Shown: in pieces, positions 12,909 to 22,664 of the stretch | Position numbering within the stretch: position 1 is the stretch's first letter | Layout: each line of letters starts with the position of its first letter | Source: Hyaloraphidium curvatum SAG 235-1 | Lineage: Eukaryota > Fungi > Monoblepharomycota | Length of the DNA: 64,000 nt | NCBI GenBank assembly: GCA_025558095.1 | Contig: JAIVFI010000008.1 | Span: 744,001-808,000, forward strand | Direction: 5' to 3' | Notes under the pieces: generated by a model | Told to the model about the DNA's origin: nothing | The model's input: the letters and a program-made list of their open reading frames with translations, nothing else | The model's database searches: none | Translations under genes and position numbers: made by a program

Positions 12909-14816
12909 CTAAGACATCTGCTCGACCCGCGCCGGACGCCCCGGCGCCAGGTCCCAGTACCGCCACACGGCCTCGTCAAAGTCCTCCAGCTCCAACACCG
13001 CCGTCATCGCCGTGACCCGCATCCACGCGAGCTCCAGCTCCCCCGCCGGCCCGCCGTCCACAGAATCCGCAGCATCCGTAGCCTGCCCCATCGGAGCGCC
13101 GTCCTCCTGCAACGGCGCAGGCTCGGAAGGAGGCCGATCGTGCGGCAGCAACCCGCCGCCCGAGTCCGACGTCAGCACGTCGCCGTCCGACGCAAAAGAG
13201 CCGTTGTCCCGCAGCGACGGCACCTCCGACGGCGGCGCATCGTCCTCCGCCAGCGGCTGGAACGCCGCGTCCCCGTCCTCCGCCACCGCCTCCGCATCGG
13301 CAAGCGCGGCAAGCACCTCCGCCGCCGTCGCCCCGGCGCGCCGCTCGTGCACCACCACGCCCTTGTACCCGCCCCCTTTGGGCGGGGATCGCTCCCTCGC
13401 TTCCTCCACCGCGAGCCTCCGCACGGGTTCCCTCCAAGCGTTGACCTTGTACGTCCTCTTCCCGTCCTTCCTCGTGCAGCACTCGCGGTGCTCTCCCTCC
13501 AGCCTCCCGCGGAACGCCGTCTCCGAAGGAACATCGTGCCAGAGGAACGAGTATAAATCCCACAGCGCCTCCAGGGGCAGGATGGTGCACGGCCGGACGA
13601 GCCCGTGCAGCCGGTCGCGGAAGCTCGGGAACGACGCGAGCTCCGAAGCTGCGCGGCGCATGCCGAGGAGGGTGATCGGCGGGCCACCGGGGGCGCCGCG
13701 GACGTCGGCGGTGAGGAGGGGGATGCCGTGCCGCCGGGAGATGTGGCGCGCGGCGGCCTGAAGGCTGGGGTCGGGGAGGTGCTCGAGGAGCCTGGGGCGG
13801 GCGTCGTACCCCTGCTGCGCACTGAAGGCGCCGAAGACATCCGAGGCGCGGATGAAGAGGTGCTCCGAGACGAGCTTGGCGAGGCCGAGGGCGATCGCGC
13901 GGATGTCCTCGTCCGCGGCCGGGTCGAGGCCCGATTCCGGCGGCGGAGGGCTCGGCTCGCGGCGCGACGGCGGCGTGGGTGTCCGTTCGCGCCGGCGGTC
14001 CCTGCCCGGGGGCGTCCGTTCCCTTCGGCGTTCCCTCTCGGGGGGCGTCCGTTCCCGCGCGCGCTCCGCGCTCGGCGCGCCCTCCCGCCGTCCGTCGGCG
14101 ATCCGCGGCTCCGGGGCCGGCAGCGCAACGCGCAGCCCGCCGGGATTGATCAGCCATTCCGCAGCGCCGCCGACGTCCTTCCACCGGCAGCACGACGAGT
14201 GCTCCCTGCCCATCGCTTCCCCGAACGCGGCGACGCCGGGGAACGACCCCGGGAAGAAGTGCGCGTGCAGTTCGTAGAGAGCCGCGGTGGTCAGGACCGT
14301 TTTGGGGTAGGTCAGGAGGTGCACCTGGTCCCGGAACGACGAGACGGCGGCCTCCTCCGGGCGCACGGGCCGCGTGATGAACACGTCGTCCGGGTCGTTG
14401 CTACAGCCCCCCAGGTGCAGCATCCTGACACCGCCGGGGAACGTGCGCTCCAGCACCAGCAGAAAGTCGTTGAGCATGTGCTTGTGCTGGCGCCCGACGC
14501 CCGAGACGGCGCCCCGGAAGTCGAGCAGGCCGTACCGCGCCTTGTAGACGCCCAGCACGTTGCGCAGCTTGAGCGCCAGGTGGTCGGAAAGCAGCGAGAG
14601 CAGGTTGTCGTGCATCTCCCTGAGGTGCGCGGCGCCCCGCGGGGGCACGGACGGCCTGCTCCGGGGGTCGTCGCCGCGCCGGCGGTCCCGCGGGGTCGGC
14701 GAGCGCGAGCGCGAGGCGGAGCGCGGGCGCTTGCCGGAATGCCGGCGCGCGGGTGCGGGAGAGGGCGAGCGCGATCGCCTGCGCGGCGGAGGCGTCGGGT
14801 CCGGCGGTCCCGACAT
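12909..14816 (-). CDS. Uncharacterised protein with two LOTUS/OST-HTH-like + HxxCC modules and RS/RP-rich linkers
   Basis: Intronless frame from MSGPPDPTPPP; internal duplication (FRDQVH...EHSSCC and FRDRLH...EHRECC); homologous to 17598-19284 and 19449-22140. Confidence 0.75.
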   Translation of the reverse strand: MSGPPDPTPPPRRRSRSPSPAPARRHSGKRPRSASRSRSPTPRDRRRGDDPRSRPSVPPRGAAHLREMHDNLLSLLSDHLALKLRNVLGVYKARYGLLDFRGAVSGVGRQHKHMLNDFLLVLERTFPGGVRMLHLGGCSNDPDDVFITRPVRPEEAAVSSFRDQVHLLTYPKTVLTTAALYELHAHFFPGSFPGVAAFGEAMGREHSSCCRWKDVGGAAEWLINPGGLRVALPAPEPRIADGRREGAPSAERARERTPPERERRRERTPPGRDRRRERTPTPPSRREPSPPPPESGLDPAADEDIRAIALGLAKLVSEHLFIRASDVFGAFSAQQGYDARPRLLEHLPDPSLQAAARHISRRHGIPLLTADVRGAPGGPPITLLGMRRAASELASFPSFRDRLHGLVRPCTILPLEALWDLYSFLWHDVPSETAFRGRLEGEHRECCTRKDGKRTYKVNAWREPVRRLAVEEARERSPPKGGGYKGVVVHERRAGATAAEVLAALADAEAVAEDGDAAFQPLAEDDAPPSEVPSLRDNGSFASDGDVLTSDSGGGLLPHDRPPSEPAPLQEDGAPMGQATDAADSVDGGPAGELELAWMRVTAMTAVLELEDFDEAVWRYWDLAPGRPARVEQMS

Positions 14817-15540
14817 GCCTGCCGGGTGCCGAAAGGAAAGGTCGGAGCTCGGGCCACCCACGCCTCCCGCCCTTAAGAGCGGGCCCTCAAGGCGCTGCAG
14901 GTGCGGAAGGCGGCGGCAGGGCATTTTCCCGATCAGCCCGGGCCTAACATCGCGGCCTGGCGCGGCTGCGGCTCCTCCGGGTGCTGAATCCGTCGCGACG
15001 AGCTGGCGGTCCGGTCCCTTTCCGGACGTCCGAATCAGAGCCGCACGGCCCGGAAAAAGGATGAATGGCACAGCGACGTTGGAAGCAAGACCGGTAGGAC
15101 GGCTCTCAGCCCGCCTTGTCGGTTTGCGGAGTTGTGGAGTTTGGCGATGGGCGCCGCAAAGGCTGCTGCATCCCGCGGAACACGCCCATACGGCTTGGCA
15201 CCGAGGCTGGCGGCAACCATCTCTCGGATCGTCGGACCTTCGAATTTGCGGATGCATGCAACGGTATCTTGAGCTGCTGCCTTTTGGCCGCTGCCGGCTC
15301 ACCCACTGGCCCACGAGCATGTTGCCCCTCAGTCAACGGCGCCTGCGTAGCACGAATCCATCCCGTCCCGGCCATCATCGGTCACTTTACCTACCATGGC
15401 TCAGTGAAGCCTCTGTAGATGCTGGGTGGAGCTCCTTCCTCTTCACCTCGCATCCGGGTGGTCTTCGGCGGCAAACTGAAGTGCCGCGGTGCCGCATAGG
15501 ACCGCCGACCGCAAAAGCGTCTCCCCCCATCCCCGCCGAA

Positions 15541-17215
15541 ATGCGGCGCCGCAGCGTGGTCCCACCGCCGCCATCGGACCTGACCGGGGACATGGAGCTC
15601 ATCGCGGCGCCCCGCCCGTCGGCGGCGTCGCTGCAGGGCGAGCCGGCGGACTCGAGCGACTCGGACTCGACCCACGCTCCCGGCGCGGATCCGGCCGATG
15701 TGGACGCCGTCGGAGGGGGGAAAGATGGGAAGGATGTGGCGGCTGCCGGTTTTTCCGAGGACGTGGCGGTGGAAGACGAGGGAGAGGCCACAGGGCCGGC
15801 AAATCCCACCGTCTCTGCCGCCTTTGACCCGGGACCGCCGCCAGACGGTAAATGGCTGCCTTCTCGAACGATTTTATGATGTGCTTATCTATCTTCCCTC
15901 TCTTTCTCTTTCCTCATGGGCACCAGGCGGATACGGATGGGTCATCGTCGCCGGAGCCTTCGCTATCCACCTCTTTGTCTTTGCTCCACAATACGCGTAC
16001 GGGGTCTACTCGCGCTACTATTACGAGTCGCAGATGTACCCGGGCGTCTCCCTGACGACCATCACCTTTGTCGGCGCCGTCGCGGCGGCCGGGTGCCCCG
16101 CCTTCGGCCCCATCTCGGGCCGGCTGTCGGACCTGTACGGCCCGCGGCCCGTGTGCTTCGTGGGGGGTTGCATCGTCGGGATCGCGTTCATCCTGGCCTC
16201 GTTTTCGACCCAGATTTGGATGCTGTTCCTGACCCAGGGTTTCCTGTACGGACTCGGCCAGAGCTTGGCCTACTTTCCATATATAGGCACCCTTCCGACG
16301 TGGTTCGGTGCCAAACGTGGCCTGGCCGTCGGGCTGGCGGTTTCCGGGACCGGGATCGGAGGATTTGCCTTCGGACCGCTTACCAACCTCATGATCACCA
16401 ACCTGTCGGTGCAGTGGTCCCTGCGGATCACGGGGATGATCATCTTTGCCATGGTTTCGATCTCGGCGTTCGTGCTGCGCTCGAGGTACAAGCCGATTCG
16501 GCGCAAGAGCGTCATGGCGGGGGCAACAAAGGCGACCAAGCCCAAGCTGATCGATTTCAGCTTCTTCAAGAACCGGCACTTCAGCATGATGTGGGCCGTG
16601 AGTACTGCGGCCGTCCTGCAGGCGATGCGATCGAGTTGGCTCACCCGTCGCGTCCAGGTCCAACTCACCGGCTTCTTCGGCTTCTTCTCCCCCTACCTCT
16701 TCCTCAGCACCTACGCCGCGTCCGTGGGCCTGTCCCAGTCGCAGGGTGCGCTCATCGTCGGCCTCACCAACTTGGGCTCCACCCTCGGCCGGGTCATCGT
16801 CGGCTTCGGCTCGGATCGCCTGGGGCCCTTCAACTCCTTCAGCCTCTGTATCTTCCTCTCGGGCCTGTCGATGATGCTGATCTGGCCCTTTTCTCGGAGC
16901 CTGGGAGCCCTCATCTTCTTCGGAATGTTCTACGCGTTTTTCAGCGGCGGCTTCGTCTCGCTGCAGCCCTCGTGCCTTTCGGCGATCATCGGCCTCCAGG
17001 CCATGGCCTCCGCGATCGGCCTGCTGTACTTTGCCGGGACCGCGGCCAACCTCGCCGGGCCGCCGCTGTCGGGCGCGCTCATCACGAACCCCAATGAGCC
17101 CTCGGGCTATATTCCAATGATGATGTTCGGGGGCGCGTTCATGCTGCTGTCGGGCTCGATCATGCTCTTTCTGAGGATGGAACGGGCAAAGTGGAAGATG
17201 TGGGTTCGCGTGTAG
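15541..17215 (+). CDS. MFS monocarboxylate-permease (MCT/Mch) family transporter
   Basis: PPPD|GGYGWVIV motif after splicing (intron ~15848-15926), GRLSDLYGPRPV, WFGAKRGLAVGLAVSGTGIGG, ~12 hydrophobic segments. Start could instead be ~15592. Confidence 0.9.
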
Positions 17216-17597
17216 GCTGCGAGCCGAAGGAAGGAAGCATCCATATCCGATTTCATCGAGACCGTGACTGAACCCGCCAGGTTACCCGTTTGGGGACCTG
17301 CTGATGCTACCGCGTAAACAACAACAACTCCGCGGCGAGGGGGCCTCTAAACCGGTCCACTGAGCTTCCTTCCATCATCGTTGCGTCCATACGTTCATTT
17401 GCTGGGCCGGCCAGCTCCGTCGATCTCCGATTCGGTCGTTCCACGACCCCCGCATCTGTTCGCACCCGAAGGACATATAGCCGGCAGTGCGCGACGCAAT
17501 TGCCCCTGGGCTCAGTGCTTCATTGCTTTGCGGACGTGCTCCGGCTAACATCGCCCAATGGACCGCTTTGGAGGGCGGTAGCAGCGGTGGTTCGACC

Positions 17598-19284
17598 AAC
17601 CTCCTGGGCGTGTACAAGAAGCGCTTCGGCCTGCTCGACTTCCGCGCGGCCGTCGCCGGCGAGAAGCGTCGGCACAAGCACCTGCTCGCCAACTTTTTCC
17701 TGCTACTGGAACGCACCTTTCCCGGCGGCGTGAGGTTGTTGTACCTGCGGGGCTGCAGCGAGGACGCGGACGACGTCTTGGTGACGCGCCCCCTGCGCCC
17801 TGAGGAGACCACCGTCACCTCTTTCCGGGACCAGATGCACCTATTGATCTACCCGAAAACGGTGCTGACCACACCCGCTCTTTACGAACTGCACGCGCAC
17901 TTCTTCCCGGGGTCTTTTCCCGGCGTCGCCGCGTTTGGGGAGGCCATGGGGAGGGATCATGCGTCGTGCTGTCGGTGGCAGGATGTCGGCGGCGCTACGG
18001 AATGGCTGATCAATCATGGCTCTCTGCGCGCGACTGTGCCTGCCGCGGAGTCACGGATCGCGGAGGGACGACGGGACGATGCCGAGCCGTGCAGCGAACT
18101 CGCGGGAACGGACGCCCCCGCCGGGGGAGCGTGGGCGGGAGCGAACGCCCCCCAAAAGAGAGCGCCGGCGGGAACAGTCGCTGCTCCCGCGCAAGGAGCG
18201 CCGGCGGGAAGGGACACCGACGCCGCGTTCGCGCCTTGGGGAAGGCCTCCCGACCTTGGAAAGATCCGTGGGTGCGTCCGCGGACGAGGACATCCGGCTC
18301 ATCGGCTTAGGCCTTGTCTCGCTCGTCACGGAGTTCCTATTCATCCGGGCCTCGGACGTCTTCGGCGCGTTTGGCGCCCTGCAGAGATACGACCCCCGCC
18401 CAATCCTCCTCCGGCGCCTTCCCGACGCGGGCGTGCACACCGTCGCCCGCCACTTTTCCGAGCGGTATGGTCTCCCCCTTGTCACCGCCGACGTCCGCGG
18501 CCCCGATAAGGGCGAGCCGCTCACCTTCCTCGCGATGCGACGCCAGCCAGAGGAACTGGCCTCGTTCCCGAGCTTCCGCGATAGGCTGCACGCCCTCGTG
18601 CGGCCATGCACCATCCTGGCGCTGGAGACGCTGTGGGACCTGTATTCCGTCTTGTGGCACGACGTGCCCTCCGAGGCCGCGTTCCGAGAAAGGCTGGACG
18701 GGGAGCACCGCGGATGCTGCACAAGAAAGGCGGGGAAGAGCACGTACAAGGTCAACTCCCGTAGGGAGCCCGTTCGGAGACTCGCGGCGGAGGAAGCTAG
18801 GGAGCGGTCCCCGCCGAGGAGAGGTGGTTACAAGGGTGTTGTTGTGCATGAGCGGCAGGACGGAGCGTCCGCGATGGCGGTGCTCGTTGCGGGTGCCGAC
18901 TTGGACGTGGGGCCTGCGGCGCCGCAGAACCAGGACACGCTTCTGAAGGAGGATGTGCTTTCGTTGGAGATGCCCTCGCTAGGGGACAACGACTCTTTCG
19001 CATCGGAGGGTGATGGGCAGATGTCGGAGTCGGGCGGCGGCTCAGCGTCGGACGATCGCCCGCCTCCCGAGCCTGTGCCATTGCAGGAGGACGACGTTTT
19101 CTTCGAATCGGATGCCGCTGCAACGGATGGTGTGGACGGCGGGCTGTCGGCCGAGCTGGAGCTCGCGTGGCTGCGGGTCAGGGCGATGCCGGGGGCGCTG
19201 GTCCTCGAGGACTTTAACGAGGCCGTTTGGAGATACTGGGACCTGGCGCCGGGGGATGCGGTACTGGTCCAGCAGAGGATTTAG
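17598..19284 (+). pseudogene. 5'-truncated, frameshifted inverted paralog of the 12909-14816 gene
   Basis: Homology starts abruptly at NLLGVYKKRFGLLDF with no in-frame ATG upstream; one extra nt relative to the paralog near 18075-18100 splits it into ORFs 17487..18509 and 18016..19284. Confidence 0.65.
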
Positions 19285-19448
19285 CGCTCCATCGACGGAT
19301 TGATCGAACTAGCGAGAACAATGCTCGCCTGCATACTCGTGGTCGGCCGTGCTTCCAGATCATGCATTTGAACCATTGAGGGTGCCGAAGATGGCACGAA
19401 AAAGCTACTACAACGTGCTGTCAAACAGACCATGCCCATGCCAAAGAC

Positions 19449-22140
19449 CTACAATCCATGCAACAATTGTTCAAATTCCTCCAGGTGAACAGCCGGCCCC
19501 GTGATGTGGGCCAAAAGCCACATCCTCCCCAGGTCCATGGCATGTGCGCTCGACGTGTCCGGCGGGGCGGTCCAGCCGCACGGCGTCAGCAAGTACGGCG
19601 GCACAGCCTCGATCAGGTCCACCTCCACGACCGGCGAGAGCGAGCCGGCCCCCATGACCAGGGTCGGAGACGCTTCTCTTGGGCCCTGCGGGGGCGGCGA
19701 TCGCACGGCCTGCAGGGTGATCGCCGAGCCCGAATGCGTGCTCTCCTGCCCCGGCGACATGCCGCCGGGAGGGCCCATGATCCCGTTCTCGCGCGAGATG
19801 GTGCCGCTCCCAGCCCGTTCTTGCACCGAGATCCGCGCCCGCTCGTGTACTGTGATCTGGCTGCGTTCGTGCACCGAGATCTTCTGCTGGCCGACCGGGG
19901 ACAGCTCGCGCGACCGAGCCGAGGAATCTCTCCGCGGAGGCGATTGCCGCGGGGGGGAGTGCCGCGGCGGGGAATGGTTCGGCGTCGCTGCAGCGCTCTC
20001 CCGCCGGCGAGGCGGTGCTGCCGCTGCCCTGGGCGGGGGGGAATCCCGCGGCGTCGACACCCTCGACGAGTTGCGTTCATGCCGACCAGCAGCTGCTGCC
20101 GAGCTCCGATCCAAAGAGTCGCGCGACGGGGCCGGGGCGACCCGCACTAGCGCGCGTCGCGGAACTGGGCCCTCCGGGCCGTCGAGGTAGCTCTTCCAGT
20201 CCTTGCCCCGGATCCTCATCTCCCGCTTCGAGGCAAGGCAGCAATCCCTGTGCTCGCGCTCGAGAGCCGCGAGGAAGCGCGGTTCGTCCTCTTCCTCCAG
20301 CTCCTTCGGCCACAGCTGCTTGTAGAGCCGCATGATAACCGTAAGCGGCATTGTCGTGCCGCGCGGCAGGATGCGGTGGATCCTCTCGATGGGCGACAAG
20401 CCGGGGTCCACGGGGCCCTCGCCGTAGATTCGGCGAACCAAGACGTGGTGCTTCTGCACCTCGCCTTTGGGAGGGACGAAGACGACGGATATCTTGCCGG
20501 GGTGGCGCAGGCTGAGCTGCTTCAGGTACGACATGGGGTACTTGACGGAAATGTCAAAGACGTCCAGGTCGAGCGGTTCTGCCGGGCAACAAAATGTTAG
20601 CCGCAAGCACCAGGCGGCGAAAGGTAACTCGTGACGACGCACCGCCAAGCTCCTGCTCGTAGACGTCCTTGAAGCTGTCCTCGTCCAGGAAGTAGGTCTG
20701 GTCAAAAAGCTTGAGGACGTTCTGGAGCCGCAGCAGCACTTCGGCCTCCGAGATGCGGAACTTCGGAAGACGCGGGTCCAGCGCCTTCTCCAGCATTACC
20801 TTCCTCTCCGACTCGAGCGTGCTCTCGGCGGCCATGGCGGTTACGCCCGTGTCCACGACGATCTCCTTCTCGCGGCCTTCGACGTTGACGAGCCACGTCT
20901 TGCCCTCGTTCACGAGCCTGCAGCACCGGCTGTGTTCCTGCTCCATTTGCCAACGAAAGTCCGAGATGCCGCCCTTGATCTGATTCTGCCACAGCCTGCA
21001 GTAAAGCTCCCAGAGGCTCTCGACCGTAGCGTCCGTCCGCGGCGGCACGAGCGCGTGGACCTGGTCCACAAAGGTGGCCAGGTCGATCTCCTGGGTTGTG
21101 AAGTCCCGACCAACAAAGGAGATCACGGCGCCGTTTGCCACGTTTCGGGGGGCTCTCGGATCGTTCGTTACCGTGACGACCTTGATGCCGCCCGGGAACG
21201 TCGCGCCGAAGTGCTCCATCAAATTGCCAAGGTGCGGGTTCGGCATGAACGACAGCATCGACTTGTAGTCCAGGAAGCCGAAGTGCCTCTTGTACACCGG
21301 TAGGAGGTCCTTCAGCTTCAGAAAACAGTATCGGGCCATGATGGCCCAGACGTTGTCGTAGACCTTGCGGAGTTCCGGGCTGCGGCAGACTTCGGGCCGG
21401 GGTTGGAAAAGCGGAGGCGAGCGTGATCGAGAGCGCATCCGCTTCGGTGGTGCTCGGTCCCGCGATTCAGAGCGGCTACCCGGAGGGGACCTGGAGCGCC
21501 TCCGCTTGCGAACGGTCTGCTCCGGCTCCTCTCCTCGCTGATCCCGCTGAGGTCCGTAAGCATAGCCACCTGGTGCCGCGCTGCTGTAGTCCCAAGTATG
21601 CAAGGGCGGCGATCGCTCCCTTTCGGCTTGGAGGGAAAGATTGACCTTCCACGAGTCGTTCCCGGCACGTTGGCAGCACTTCGCATGCCAGCGATTCATC
21701 CGGTCCGCAAAGTAGCCCGCGTCGCGCTTGTCTTCAGGAAAAGCTTCCTCGTACAGGTCTTGCAACGTATCCAACGTGATGAGCGTTCCGGGAGGTAAGA
21801 GAACGTGCAGCCGCTCCTGGAAATTCTCTAGAGCGCGCTCCTCGCGATAGGGACCCCGCCCCAGAAACGTCCGACTGCCATTATTCTGGCCTCTAACGGT
21901 GACAAGACGCAAACCGCCGGGAAAATTGGCCGTGTACTTCTGGAAATGGCTCAGGAGGTTGGAGAGCGTCGCCCTGTTGTACACTCCTTCGAGGAGCCTA
22001 GGAATGTCCAGCGGGCCGAACTTGTCGCGATAGATGGGAACCACGGCCTCGACAGACAAGAAAACATGGTCCTTCAGCATCCTGAGGAGATTTGCGTTTA
22101 CCTCCACCATTGTAGGCGCCCGGGTCGACAGTTGAGCCAT
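19449..22140 (-). CDS. Uncharacterised protein with three LOTUS/OST-HTH-like + HxxCC modules (one intron ~20580-20642)
   Basis: ORFs 20554..22152 and 19449..20705 join at YEQELG|EPLDLDV; modules end in HAKCC, EHSRCC and EHRDCC; RSRS/SPPR-rich linkers. Confidence 0.8.
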
Positions 22141-22141
22141 G

Positions 22142-22323
22142 TCGAGCTCCAACCGCCGTTGCGCGACACCGACAGAGCTCAGGTGACGGCCAGACGAGCT
22201 CCGGCGTGAAAAGAATCGGGAGCGCCCCGCAATCGAGCTCCGACCGCCGTTGCACGACTCCGACCGAGCTCAGGTGACCAAGAGACGCGGTCCGCCGTGA
22301 GTTAAATCAGGAGGGCCCCGCAA
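22142..22323. repeat. Imperfect ~91-bp direct tandem repeat (2 copies) immediately upstream of the ATG at 22140
   Basis: tcgagctcc(a/g)accgccgttgc...gagctcaggtgac...gccccgcaa at ~22142-22232 and ~22233-22323. Confidence 0.85.
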
Positions 22324-22664
22324 CACACGACTGGACGCGTGAAACGCGGTCGACAGGCGGGACGCGGGGTGCGCAACGGGACGGTTGTCAATGCGCGGCT
22401 TCCGCCGGCGGGCGCGGCGGCAGCGGCCCCGCAGTCATCGGCAAATTCATGCAGATCGCATTCCCGCGGCCCAGAAGGTGTCGTGTCCTCCGCCCGGATC
22501 CGGCCGACGGACCTATCGGCTGCGGTTCGCGGTGGAGGCTGGAGAGCCGCTCACTCGGGGGCTCGCGGCGACGCCTGCGCCGCACGATCAAACTAGGCAA
22601 CCGTTCTCCGCCCGATTCATTCGCCCCTCGTGAACCGGGAGGCCGATTCCGTGCCCTCGGCACG

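Follow-up and report, generated by a model that had tools for sequence, protein, structure and literature searches.

What kind of protein is encoded by three adjacent genes of the freshwater fungus Hyaloraphidium curvatum that are built from copies of one module joined by arginine- and serine-rich linkers? We addressed this question in a window of 64,000 nucleotides (the whole stretch of DNA that was analysed), in which genes A, B and C extend from the stop codon of gene A at 12909 to the ATG of gene C at 22140. All-against-all BLASTP of five ORFs of the window revealed the same module repeating within and between ORFs (A against C, E 7e-36 and 3e-26; B1 against C, 5e-18; the C2 ORF against C1, 2e-6), and non-paralogous modules pair at E 1e-13 to 7e-36. 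An earlier interpretation made without database searches (the sequence-only reading) had counted seven copies of a module of ~150 aa, distributed 2, 2 and 3 over the three genes; the repeats are confirmed in these numbers, but the first copy in gene B is truncated and followed by a frameshift, and the module measures ~165 aa. The motif that it had discerned in the second half of the module, F-x-[DE]-[RQ]-h-H-x-L-x-x-P-x-T...L-Y...H-x-x-C-C...W-x-V-N, forms the conserved core in alignments A1 and A2.

Gene C, on the minus strand, has an intact frame and consists of two exons whose spliced model equals the database protein P0001 (875 aa). Exon 1 (20643..22140, from the ORF and sequence) encodes module 1 (21628-22110, by alignment), an RS linker, module 2 (20869-21378, by alignment) and the initial part of module 3, which is split by the intron (20644-20778 + 20193-20576, by alignment). 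The 64-nt intron (20579..20642, GT..CTAAC..AG) is absent from a contig of run X1, which joins 20578/20643, and exon 2 (19449..20578; ORF, P0001 and alignments) supplies the rest of module 3, an RS/SPPR-rich tail containing two I-x-V-H-E-R motifs, and the C-terminal motif. Gene C is thus expressed and spliced. Gene A, likewise on the minus strand and with an intact frame, has a probable CDS of 635 aa (12909..14816) whose start codon we place at 14816 from the beginning of the RS region; the open frame extends upstream to 15320, and this extension looks non-coding. Its product comprises an N-terminal RS region, module 1 (14136-14633, aligned to the other modules), a RERTPP-rich linker, module 2 (13425..13925), an acidic tail and, in the C-terminal 50 residues (12912..13061, alignment A5), the C-terminal motif (..ELELAW..LELEDFDEAV..). 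Module 1 divides into a LOTUS-like subdomain (14364..14633; alignments A2 and A3, the fold being taken from the gene C module models) and a winged-helix subdomain with an H...HxxCC tetrad (14136..14363; alignments A2 and A4), and alignments divide module 2 in the same way (LOTUS-like 13650-13925, winged helix 13425-13649).

Gene B, on the plus strand (17574-19284), is a paralogue of gene A (63-73% identical) and is read in two overlapping ORFs, 17487-18509 and 18016-19284. Its first module is a remnant (17574..18023) that lacks the first ~20 residues, comprising the first helix; similarity to A starts abruptly near 17597, and there is no in-frame ATG upstream of the module. Between module 1 and the linker lies a frameshift relative to gene A (18075..18090, from the sequence and the overlapping ORFs), which is unchanged, with no indel, in the RNA-derived contig of run X1. 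The downstream ORF of 422 aa, with an ATG at 18016 (18016..19284; ORF, BLASTP and alignments), encodes the linker, an intact module 2 (18271-18771, by alignment), the tail and the C-terminal motif (19132-19281, alignment of 12 family proteins). The dN/dS of B versus A is 0.28 both in the module 1 remnant and in module 2, showing that the A and B modules are under purifying selection. We conclude that gene B arose as a copy of A and has partly decayed, with the downstream single-module ORF alone looking intact.

The fold of the module was predicted with AF2 for module 2 of gene C (170 residues). The whole module (pLDDT 88.9, pTM 0.83) was predicted as a-b-a-a-a-b-b followed by a-b-a-a-b-b, and the N-terminal half modelled alone (pLDDT 90.8) as a1, b1, a2, a short insert helix, a3, b2 and b3 (H2-14, E19-21, H22-33, H38-42, H50-60, E65-71, E85-91), a winged helix-turn-helix topology. 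When residues 1-93 (21100..21378, minus strand) were compared with 48,161 PDB representatives by VIA-align, the best superposition was on TDRD7 (3rco_A; Z 10.1, rmsd 1.6 A, 73/76 residues), followed by TDRD5 (3s93_B, Z 9.5), Tejas (8wxs_B, 9.1) and Oskar (5cd8_A, 8.0), and these four LOTUS domains were the only matches at Z>=8 in the entire set. The LOTUS domain of MARF1 reached Z 7.7, non-LOTUS chains at most 7.9 and typical winged helices 6-7.3; the LOTUS superpositions span 68-73 residues at 1.6-2.0 A. The same residues match an ESM-Atlas cluster that is 100% PF12872 (row TM 0.54), and the Foldseek E-values for module matches are not significant. The proposed LOTUS/OST-HTH resemblance of the module's first half is therefore supported by a predicted winged helix of LOTUS type. 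A shared fold does not establish a function; winged helices bind DNA and proteins too.

OST-HTH domains are described as unique among winged helices in having a helical insert that separates helix 2 from helix 3; its helix is given 'at least two turns', and the insert carries a conserved G-h-x-p-h motif (PMC2848206). The module has an insert of 16 residues (34-49), in which both AF2 models place a helix at 38-41/42 that amounts to about one turn by DSSP. The glycine of the motif (G34) is found in 24 of 33 modules and the aspartate three residues on (D37) in 18 of 33, typically as G-F-L-D-Y, G-P-L-D-F or G-L-L-D-F; module 2 of both A and B, like several other modules, lacks the motif. The PF12872 profile found no match in the five ORFs at E<=1, in the 33 modules at E<=10 or in the genome translated in six frames at E<=10, the last of which also means that the genome holds no Pfam-detectable OST-HTH domain. 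No Pfam family matches the 33 modules, with a lone chance-level RRM_10 match (E 0.15) in one of them, and profile searches of PDB sequences returned nothing below E 0.3. Since the PF12872 profile finds no match, we assign LOTUS membership by structure and one short motif, and no further than to the fold or superfamily.

The second half of the module (residues ~99-170; 20869..21099, minus strand, from AF2 and conservation) had been described as helical; AF2 instead predicts a canonical winged helix with both helices and strands. It carries the residues H108, H149, C152 and C153, the first histidine in helix 1 and the His-x-x-Cys-Cys ending helix 3, and of 33 modules, drawn from at least three organisms, 32 retain this tetrad, while the sole exception, P0019, has lost all four residues together. 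The H...HxxCC tetrad is probably a structural zinc site.

When 1.84 billion proteins were searched exhaustively by profile, 22 family matches were returned, from H. curvatum, two relatives (known from read-archive assemblies only) and one metagenome, each protein with 1-4 module copies. The cluster is half of the family in the H. curvatum genome, which has three further loci on contigs C36, C1 and C13; the one on C36, gene D, is interrupted within HxxCC by an in-frame TGA and also changes frame. A lineage-specific family had been surmised, and the search agrees. A local expansion had been surmised too: the A/B duplication and the tandem family genes that a relative likewise has speak for it, but gene C did not arise by recent local copying, as it has a syntenic orthologue in a relative where neighbouring genes are 53-67% identical. 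A winged-helix fold is predicted, no described family is matched and gene C is expressed, and on these three points the sequence-only reading of an unrecognised family stands. We regard as real a divergent, lineage-restricted family, LOTUS by predicted fold, with a new composite module.

Arg makes up 22-28% of the linkers, Ser 13-18% and Pro 16-26%, and each linker contains 10-12 RS/SR dipeptides, which upholds their earlier description as RS/RSPP-rich; they are very basic and, like the tails, also rich in Ser/Thr-Pro sites. In the tails, occurrences of the motif h-x-V-H-E-R number 14, compared with an expectation of 0.57 in shuffled sequences, and a terminal motif, D-L...L-x-D-F-D, aligns across 12 family proteins (alignment A5), as had been claimed for the C-terminal motif. 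A Pfam scan of the window's proteins found neither an RRM nor another classical RNA-binding domain, and module pI ranges from 5 to 9.8 across the family. Given the prediction of a LOTUS-type unit, a second winged helix and RS linkers, a role as RNA-particle scaffolds is the most likely one, and we put at about 0.5 the probability that these lineage-restricted modular proteins are multivalent scaffolds of ribonucleoprotein assemblies. In such a scaffold, a rigid unit of ~165 residues would consist of a divergent LOTUS/OST-HTH winged helix with a canonical winged helix packed on it, the four near-invariant His/Cys residues would hold a structural zinc ion, and disordered, SR-protein-like linkers rich in Arg, Ser and Pro would join the units. 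The partner of the LOTUS units would be RNA (G-rich or structured), an RNA helicase or both. The RS linkers, which can be phosphorylated, would together with the tail motifs provide additional contacts and probably direct the proteins to the nucleus. We infer RNA or helicase binding, scaffolding and localisation from these features and from the behaviour of known LOTUS domains, which bind G-rich and G4 RNA (PMC7498356).

The proteins could instead bind DNA or chromatin, with DNA contacted by the canonical winged helix (a fold found in linker histone, forkhead and Fur) and by basic Ser-Pro-Arg tracts acting like histone H1 or protamine tails; this reading is unlikely. Most matches of the second subdomain are indeed to winged helices that bind DNA (Fur, MecI, histone H5, FoxP3, SAMD1), and the very basic linkers would suit such a role, but these matches are generic, their Z of ~6 being the background level for the winged-helix fold. 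The strongest conservation, moreover, lies in the buried-looking His/Cys tetrad and not in a basic recognition helix, and in the gene C modules the second half has an acidic pI of 5.1-5.3. RS and RERTPP tracts, for their part, are typical of RNA-processing factors.

Adaptors that recruit a helicase, concentrating it in a granule or speckle, are a distinctly doubtful alternative. The four LOTUS domains that superpose best are all of the eLOTUS class and rank above the mLOTUS domain of MARF1, and eLOTUS domains bind Vasa, the contact being made with the C-terminal RecA domain of the DEAD-box helicase (PMC5458760). Vasa binding, however, requires a C-terminal extension helix (a5) and a narrow set of interface residues (PMC5458760). 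In the AF2 model strand 3 is followed by a short helix (95-98) and then by helix 103-110 of the second winged helix, either of which may occupy the a5 position. Vasa proper, besides, is an animal germline protein.

We give little credence to protein-protein adaptors of tandem winged helices devoid of a nucleic-acid role, after the manner of MAGE-NSE1, ESCRT-II and the cullin WHB. MAGE-G1/NSE1, the tandem winged-helix domain of Rpc5 and ESCRT-II do head the whole-module Foldseek rows, but weakly (E 0.016-0.1, TM 0.28-0.36, rmsd 9-16 A); VIA-align matches at most 78 of the module's 170 residues to any solved chain, and neither the genes nor the DNA beside them encode a RING, cullin or ESCRT partner domain. 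That the cluster is evolutionary debris, decaying duplicates with no present function, is highly improbable: the losses in gene B module 1 and the lesions of gene D fit it, but the intact frames of A and C, the splicing, expression and syntenic orthologue of C, the dN/dS and the near-invariant tetrad confine decay to B module 1 and possibly D.

A more specific form of the ribonucleoprotein-scaffold reading, which we offer only tentatively, makes the family a putative counterpart, in fungi, of the LOTUS scaffolds of animals (Oskar, TDRD5/7 and MIP-1/2). A new composite RNA-binding unit on SR-like linkers, in which a LOTUS domain would be joined to a winged helix stapled by zinc, would organise an RNA granule in the nucleus or cytoplasm, or else deal with G-rich or G-quadruplex-prone transcripts; the G+C content of the genome here is ~65%. 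If this is true, LOTUS-based granule assembly extends beyond animals and a new domain is defined. More generally, a LOTUS-type fold has here diverged past the reach of sequence profiles and is always joined to a tetrad winged helix. Should the module bind RNA or a helicase, multivalent LOTUS scaffolds arose outside animals, and the family would offer a new composite domain for annotating orphan proteins and a small, well-folded unit with which to test LOTUS recognition of G-rich RNA; should it bind neither, the family remains a clear case of one that structure prediction alone can place.

Among known systems, the tandem winged-helix modules of the MAGE homology domain, ESCRT-II subunits and Rpc5 also pack two winged helices as one unit, but they differ in mutual orientation, as the TM and rmsd values above indicate, and the family's first winged helix is of LOTUS type. 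SR and SR-related proteins share the linkers and tails rich in RS/SR dipeptides and Ser/Thr-Pro sites; RS tracts are phosphorylated by SR-protein kinases and target proteins to nuclear speckles. In the family, however, the RS tracts sit between folded modules and not at one end, and as the one or two N-terminal RRMs of SR proteins are missing, the family does not, strictly speaking, consist of SR proteins. Egalitarian also carries several LOTUS-like winged helices on flexible linkers, its ED1-ED3 domains binding the stem-loops of localising mRNAs (PMC13186709), and residues ~92-167 of the Egl chain 9rvy_D align with both module halves at Z 5.9-6.5, the generic winged-helix range; it differs in its exonuclease-homology domain, its BicD partner and the lack of a His/Cys tetrad. 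By architecture, the family resembles Caenorhabditis elegans MIP-1/MIP-2 and LOTR-1, paralogous genes encoding a few LOTUS domains with disordered regions between them, of which MIP-1 and MIP-2 are portrayed as germ-granule hubs of two LOTUS domains and disordered regions (in the account of PMC8331183) and serve as the model of a multivalent scaffold; these proteins recruit GLH-1, a Vasa homologue, in the germ granules of animals and have no second winged helix, His/Cys tetrad or RS linkers.

The PF12872 domains of TDRD7, TDRD5, Tejas, Oskar and MARF1 share with the module the predicted fold of residues 1-93, the insert and the G-h-x-p-h motif, and they too occur as tandem arrays in proteins with long disordered regions. 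LOTUS domains are familiar chiefly from animal germline granule proteins and NYN-nuclease proteins. In contrast to these, the family has no detectable sequence similarity to PF12872 and no Tudor, OSK, NYN or RRM partner domain, and it adds to each LOTUS-like unit an H...HxxCC winged helix and RS-rich linkers, in a fungal host rather than in the animal germline.

Hyaloraphidium curvatum is a freshwater, non-flagellate relative of the monoblepharid chytrids, and its assembly, which includes the window, comprises 31.9 Mb in 55 contigs. Within the window (G+C ~65%), the ORF listing shows five long ORFs between 12909 and 22152 that constitute three genes: A (ORF 12909-15320, minus strand), B (two overlapping frames, 17487-18509 and 18016-19284, plus strand) and C (20554-22152 plus 19449-20705, minus strand). 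An MFS transporter gene unrelated to the family (15698-17215, plus strand) separates A from B, a PQQ-dehydrogenase/NPCBM gene (22449-25678) is the next gene beyond C, and neither Rfam nor a tRNA scan gave any match in the window. The frame of gene A is intact, and from the sequence we placed its likely start at the methionine at 14816, the onset of the RS region. The open frame continues for 168 codons upstream of this position with no family similarity, probably because a frame can stay open by chance in DNA of 70% G+C, and the same probably applies to the numerous long ORFs that overlap on the two strands near gene A.

All-against-all BLASTP matched A to C (E 7e-36 and 3e-26) and B to C (5e-18) and returned internal matches inside each of the three proteins. 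We placed the seven copies of one module that the sequence-only reading had counted as two in A, two in B and three in C (module 3 of C was analysed as two exon pieces and through the stored protein P0001). A and B are paralogues with 63-73% identity. The motifs written out in that reading form the conserved core of the module alignment, and its RS-rich linkers and common C-terminal motif were likewise recovered: each linker carries 10-12 RS/SR dipeptides, with Arg, Ser and Pro making up 22-28%, 13-18% and 16-26% of the residues, and the motif, approximately D-L-x3-h-x2-h-x2-L-P-x2-h-x-L-x-D-F-D-x-h-h, aligns in 12 family proteins. A second motif, h-x-V-(H/V)-E-R (for example, VVVHER and ISVHER), occurs one to four times per disordered tail after the last module, with 14 occurrences in tails compared to 0.57 expected from shuffles; it is found in the window at 19449-19800, 13350-13420 and 18830-18850, and in the tails of the database proteins P0002, P0003, P0004, P0013 and P0020. 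Complex prediction for the last 65 residues of gene C against its three modules gave no answer (score 0.00) and counts neither for nor against contact between them.

AlphaFold2 modeling of gene C module 2 with a nine-sequence alignment (pLDDT 88.9, pTM 0.83) predicted two subdomains, the first of which (residues 1-93) runs helix, strand, helix, short helix, helix, strand, strand. In a structure search of 48,161 PDB representatives all matches covering these residues were LOTUS domains. The N-terminal half folded alone from 33 sequences (pLDDT 90.8) gave just four matches at Z≥8, each a LOTUS domain: TDRD7 (Z 10.1, 1.6 Å over 73 of 76 residues), TDRD5 (9.5), Tejas (9.1) and Oskar (8.0). The LOTUS domain of MARF1 came next (7.7), whereas ordinary winged helices scored 7.3 or less. 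Residues 1-93 are matched as well by an ESM-Atlas cluster whose members are 100% PF12872, and the N-terminal half has two hallmarks of the OST-HTH domain described by Anantharaman et al., an insert helix between helices 2 and 3 and a G-h-x-p-h motif carried within this insert (PMC2848206).

Profile searches did not recover this relationship. The Pfam scan assigned no family to the five ORFs and nothing recurrent to the 33 modules, and PF12872 searched against all six frames of the 31.9-Mb assembly had no match at E≤10, implying that any LOTUS domains of H. curvatum are of the divergent kind found in this family. Profiles of either half against PDB sequences gave only chance-level rows (best E 0.36), language-model look-alike searches with both halves stayed at 0.76-0.87, below the meaningful level, and Foldseek against the PDB with the whole module and the N-terminal half returned none at E≤0.001. 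Archaeal RNA polymerase subunit H shares a short HxLVPxH stretch (E 0.6), a resemblance that we attribute to chance. Because Foldseek E-values were never significant, we file the N-terminal half as LOTUS by fold and motif rather than by sequence profile; the earlier description of it as LOTUS/OST-HTH-like thus holds for the predicted fold and the G-h-x-p-h motif, but not for the PF12872 profile or Foldseek significance.

The second subdomain (residues 99-170) is predicted as helix, strand, helix, helix, strand, strand, which in the model is a canonical three-helix winged helix, with generic structural matches at Z ~6 (Fur, MecI, cullin WHB, histone H5 and forkhead). The best overlap of the module with any solved chain was 78 of 170 residues, so the whole two-subdomain unit is without a solved counterpart among the PDB representatives. 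Mean column identity in the 33-module alignment is 23%, and only H108, L110, H149, C152 and C153 are near-invariant. All four of H108, H149, C152 and C153 are present in 32 of the 33 modules, and the sole exception, P0019, has all four swapped at once for R, G, K and K. This all-or-none pattern, the four classical ligands and their positions, on the final turn of helix 1 and where helix 3 ends and leads into strand 2, suggest that the His/Cys tetrad is a structural zinc site.

A 64-nt intron (20579-20642, minus strand), bounded by GT and AG and containing the branch site CTAAC, connects the two frames of gene C, and the spliced model is identical to the stored 875-aa database protein P0001. 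X1, the sole public sequencing run containing window DNA, is stored as contigs, and one of 7.7 kb omits exactly the 64 intron bases, indicating that X1 includes spliced RNA and that gene C is expressed. This single contig spans the convergent genes B and C (17883-22300 and beyond), whose 3' ends are 165 nt apart, and continues into the PQQ-dehydrogenase/NPCBM gene; transcripts therefore bridge the 3' ends, and transcription units lie very close together.

In the stretch 17216-18100, gene B proves to be a copy of A with a truncated 5' end and a frameshift; RNA-derived contigs still cover it. Similarity to A sets in abruptly near 17597, module 1 lacks the first helix and is preceded by no in-frame ATG, and the frame shifts relative to A near 18075-18090. 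Across the damage the X1 contigs follow the genome with no indel and no splice, and the damage is therefore not an assembly error. We also looked for an exon farther upstream, or another frame, that could supply the missing N-terminus and rejected both, since no protein or DNA homology exists upstream of ~17597 and the RNA-derived contig stays colinear with the genome in this stretch. With dN/dS for B versus A at 0.28 in both modules (dS ~0.5-0.7), the damage looks recent relative to the A/B duplication. The downstream ORF (ATG 18016) still encodes a linker, one intact module, the tail and the C-terminal motif, and judging by this frame gene B may still make a single-module protein.

An exhaustive search of 1.84 billion representative proteins with a nine-module profile (E≤0.001) matched 22 proteins. 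These include P0001 (gene C) and P0008 (a fragment of A) from the window, P0009 (KAI9034446.1, H. curvatum), which is encoded with 100% identity on contig C1, P0002 and P0004 from the read-archive assembly SRR23967301, P0003, P0010, P0011 and P0020 from SRR26194948, and P0013 of metagenome origin. The profile also located further members in the H. curvatum assembly, the two-module genes D (contig C36) and E (P0009) and the single-module gene F (contig C13). In SRR23967301 (56% G+C), P0002 is the orthologue of gene C and adjoins the same PQQ-dehydrogenase/NPCBM and MFS genes, which share 53-67% protein identity with their window counterparts (locus L024); their order and orientation are rearranged in that assembly. 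Gene C is thus old, and the local expansion proposed from the sequence narrows to the A/B duplication. Tandem duplication of the family recurs in other lineages: SRR26194948 has three head-to-tail genes on one 9.5-kb contig (L029:1559-6796), at least two of which (P0011 and P0015) are single-module members. We rejected a transposon or viral origin, given the syntenic orthologues and ordinary host neighbors. Gene D contains an in-frame TGA inside H-x-x-C-C (H-stop-G-C-C; L007:1540-1542, contig C36, minus strand), past which conserved sequence resumes, and a 35-nt GT..AG stretch that shifts the frame in module 2 (L007:1148-1182, minus strand). The gene could be decaying, carry a very short intron or undergo stop read-through; selenocysteine seems unlikely, the position being variable.

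Family proteins string one to four LOTUS-plus-winged-helix units along RS linkers and carry short conserved motifs in the tail; RS tracts are a mark of RNA-processing factors. In our analysis a multivalent RNP scaffold would best fit these rigid units, linkers and tail motifs, at a probability of about one half. A DNA or chromatin binder, histone H5 and forkhead being among the C-half matches, is a doubtful alternative. Somewhat less probable is a helicase adaptor, which is compatible with the scaffold reading; the extended LOTUS subclass binds the helicase Vasa and also stimulates it (PMC5458760). An adaptor solely for proteins, of the tandem winged-helix type, is improbable, and evolutionary debris, which applies only to a portion of B and possibly to D, is very improbable for the family.

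The LOTUS- and organism-directed literature yielded no paper on the family, the fusion, the RS-linker architecture or the tail motifs. Pfam has no entry for the family, this architecture, the tail motifs or the obligatory fusion to a winged helix with the His/Cys tetrad; the fold of the N-terminal half is already known. For the multivalent scaffold, known systems offer two points of comparison: proteins with a few LOTUS domains and disordered regions that act as granule hubs (PMC8331183), and the LOTUS-like arrays of Egalitarian, which read localizing RNAs (PMC13186709).
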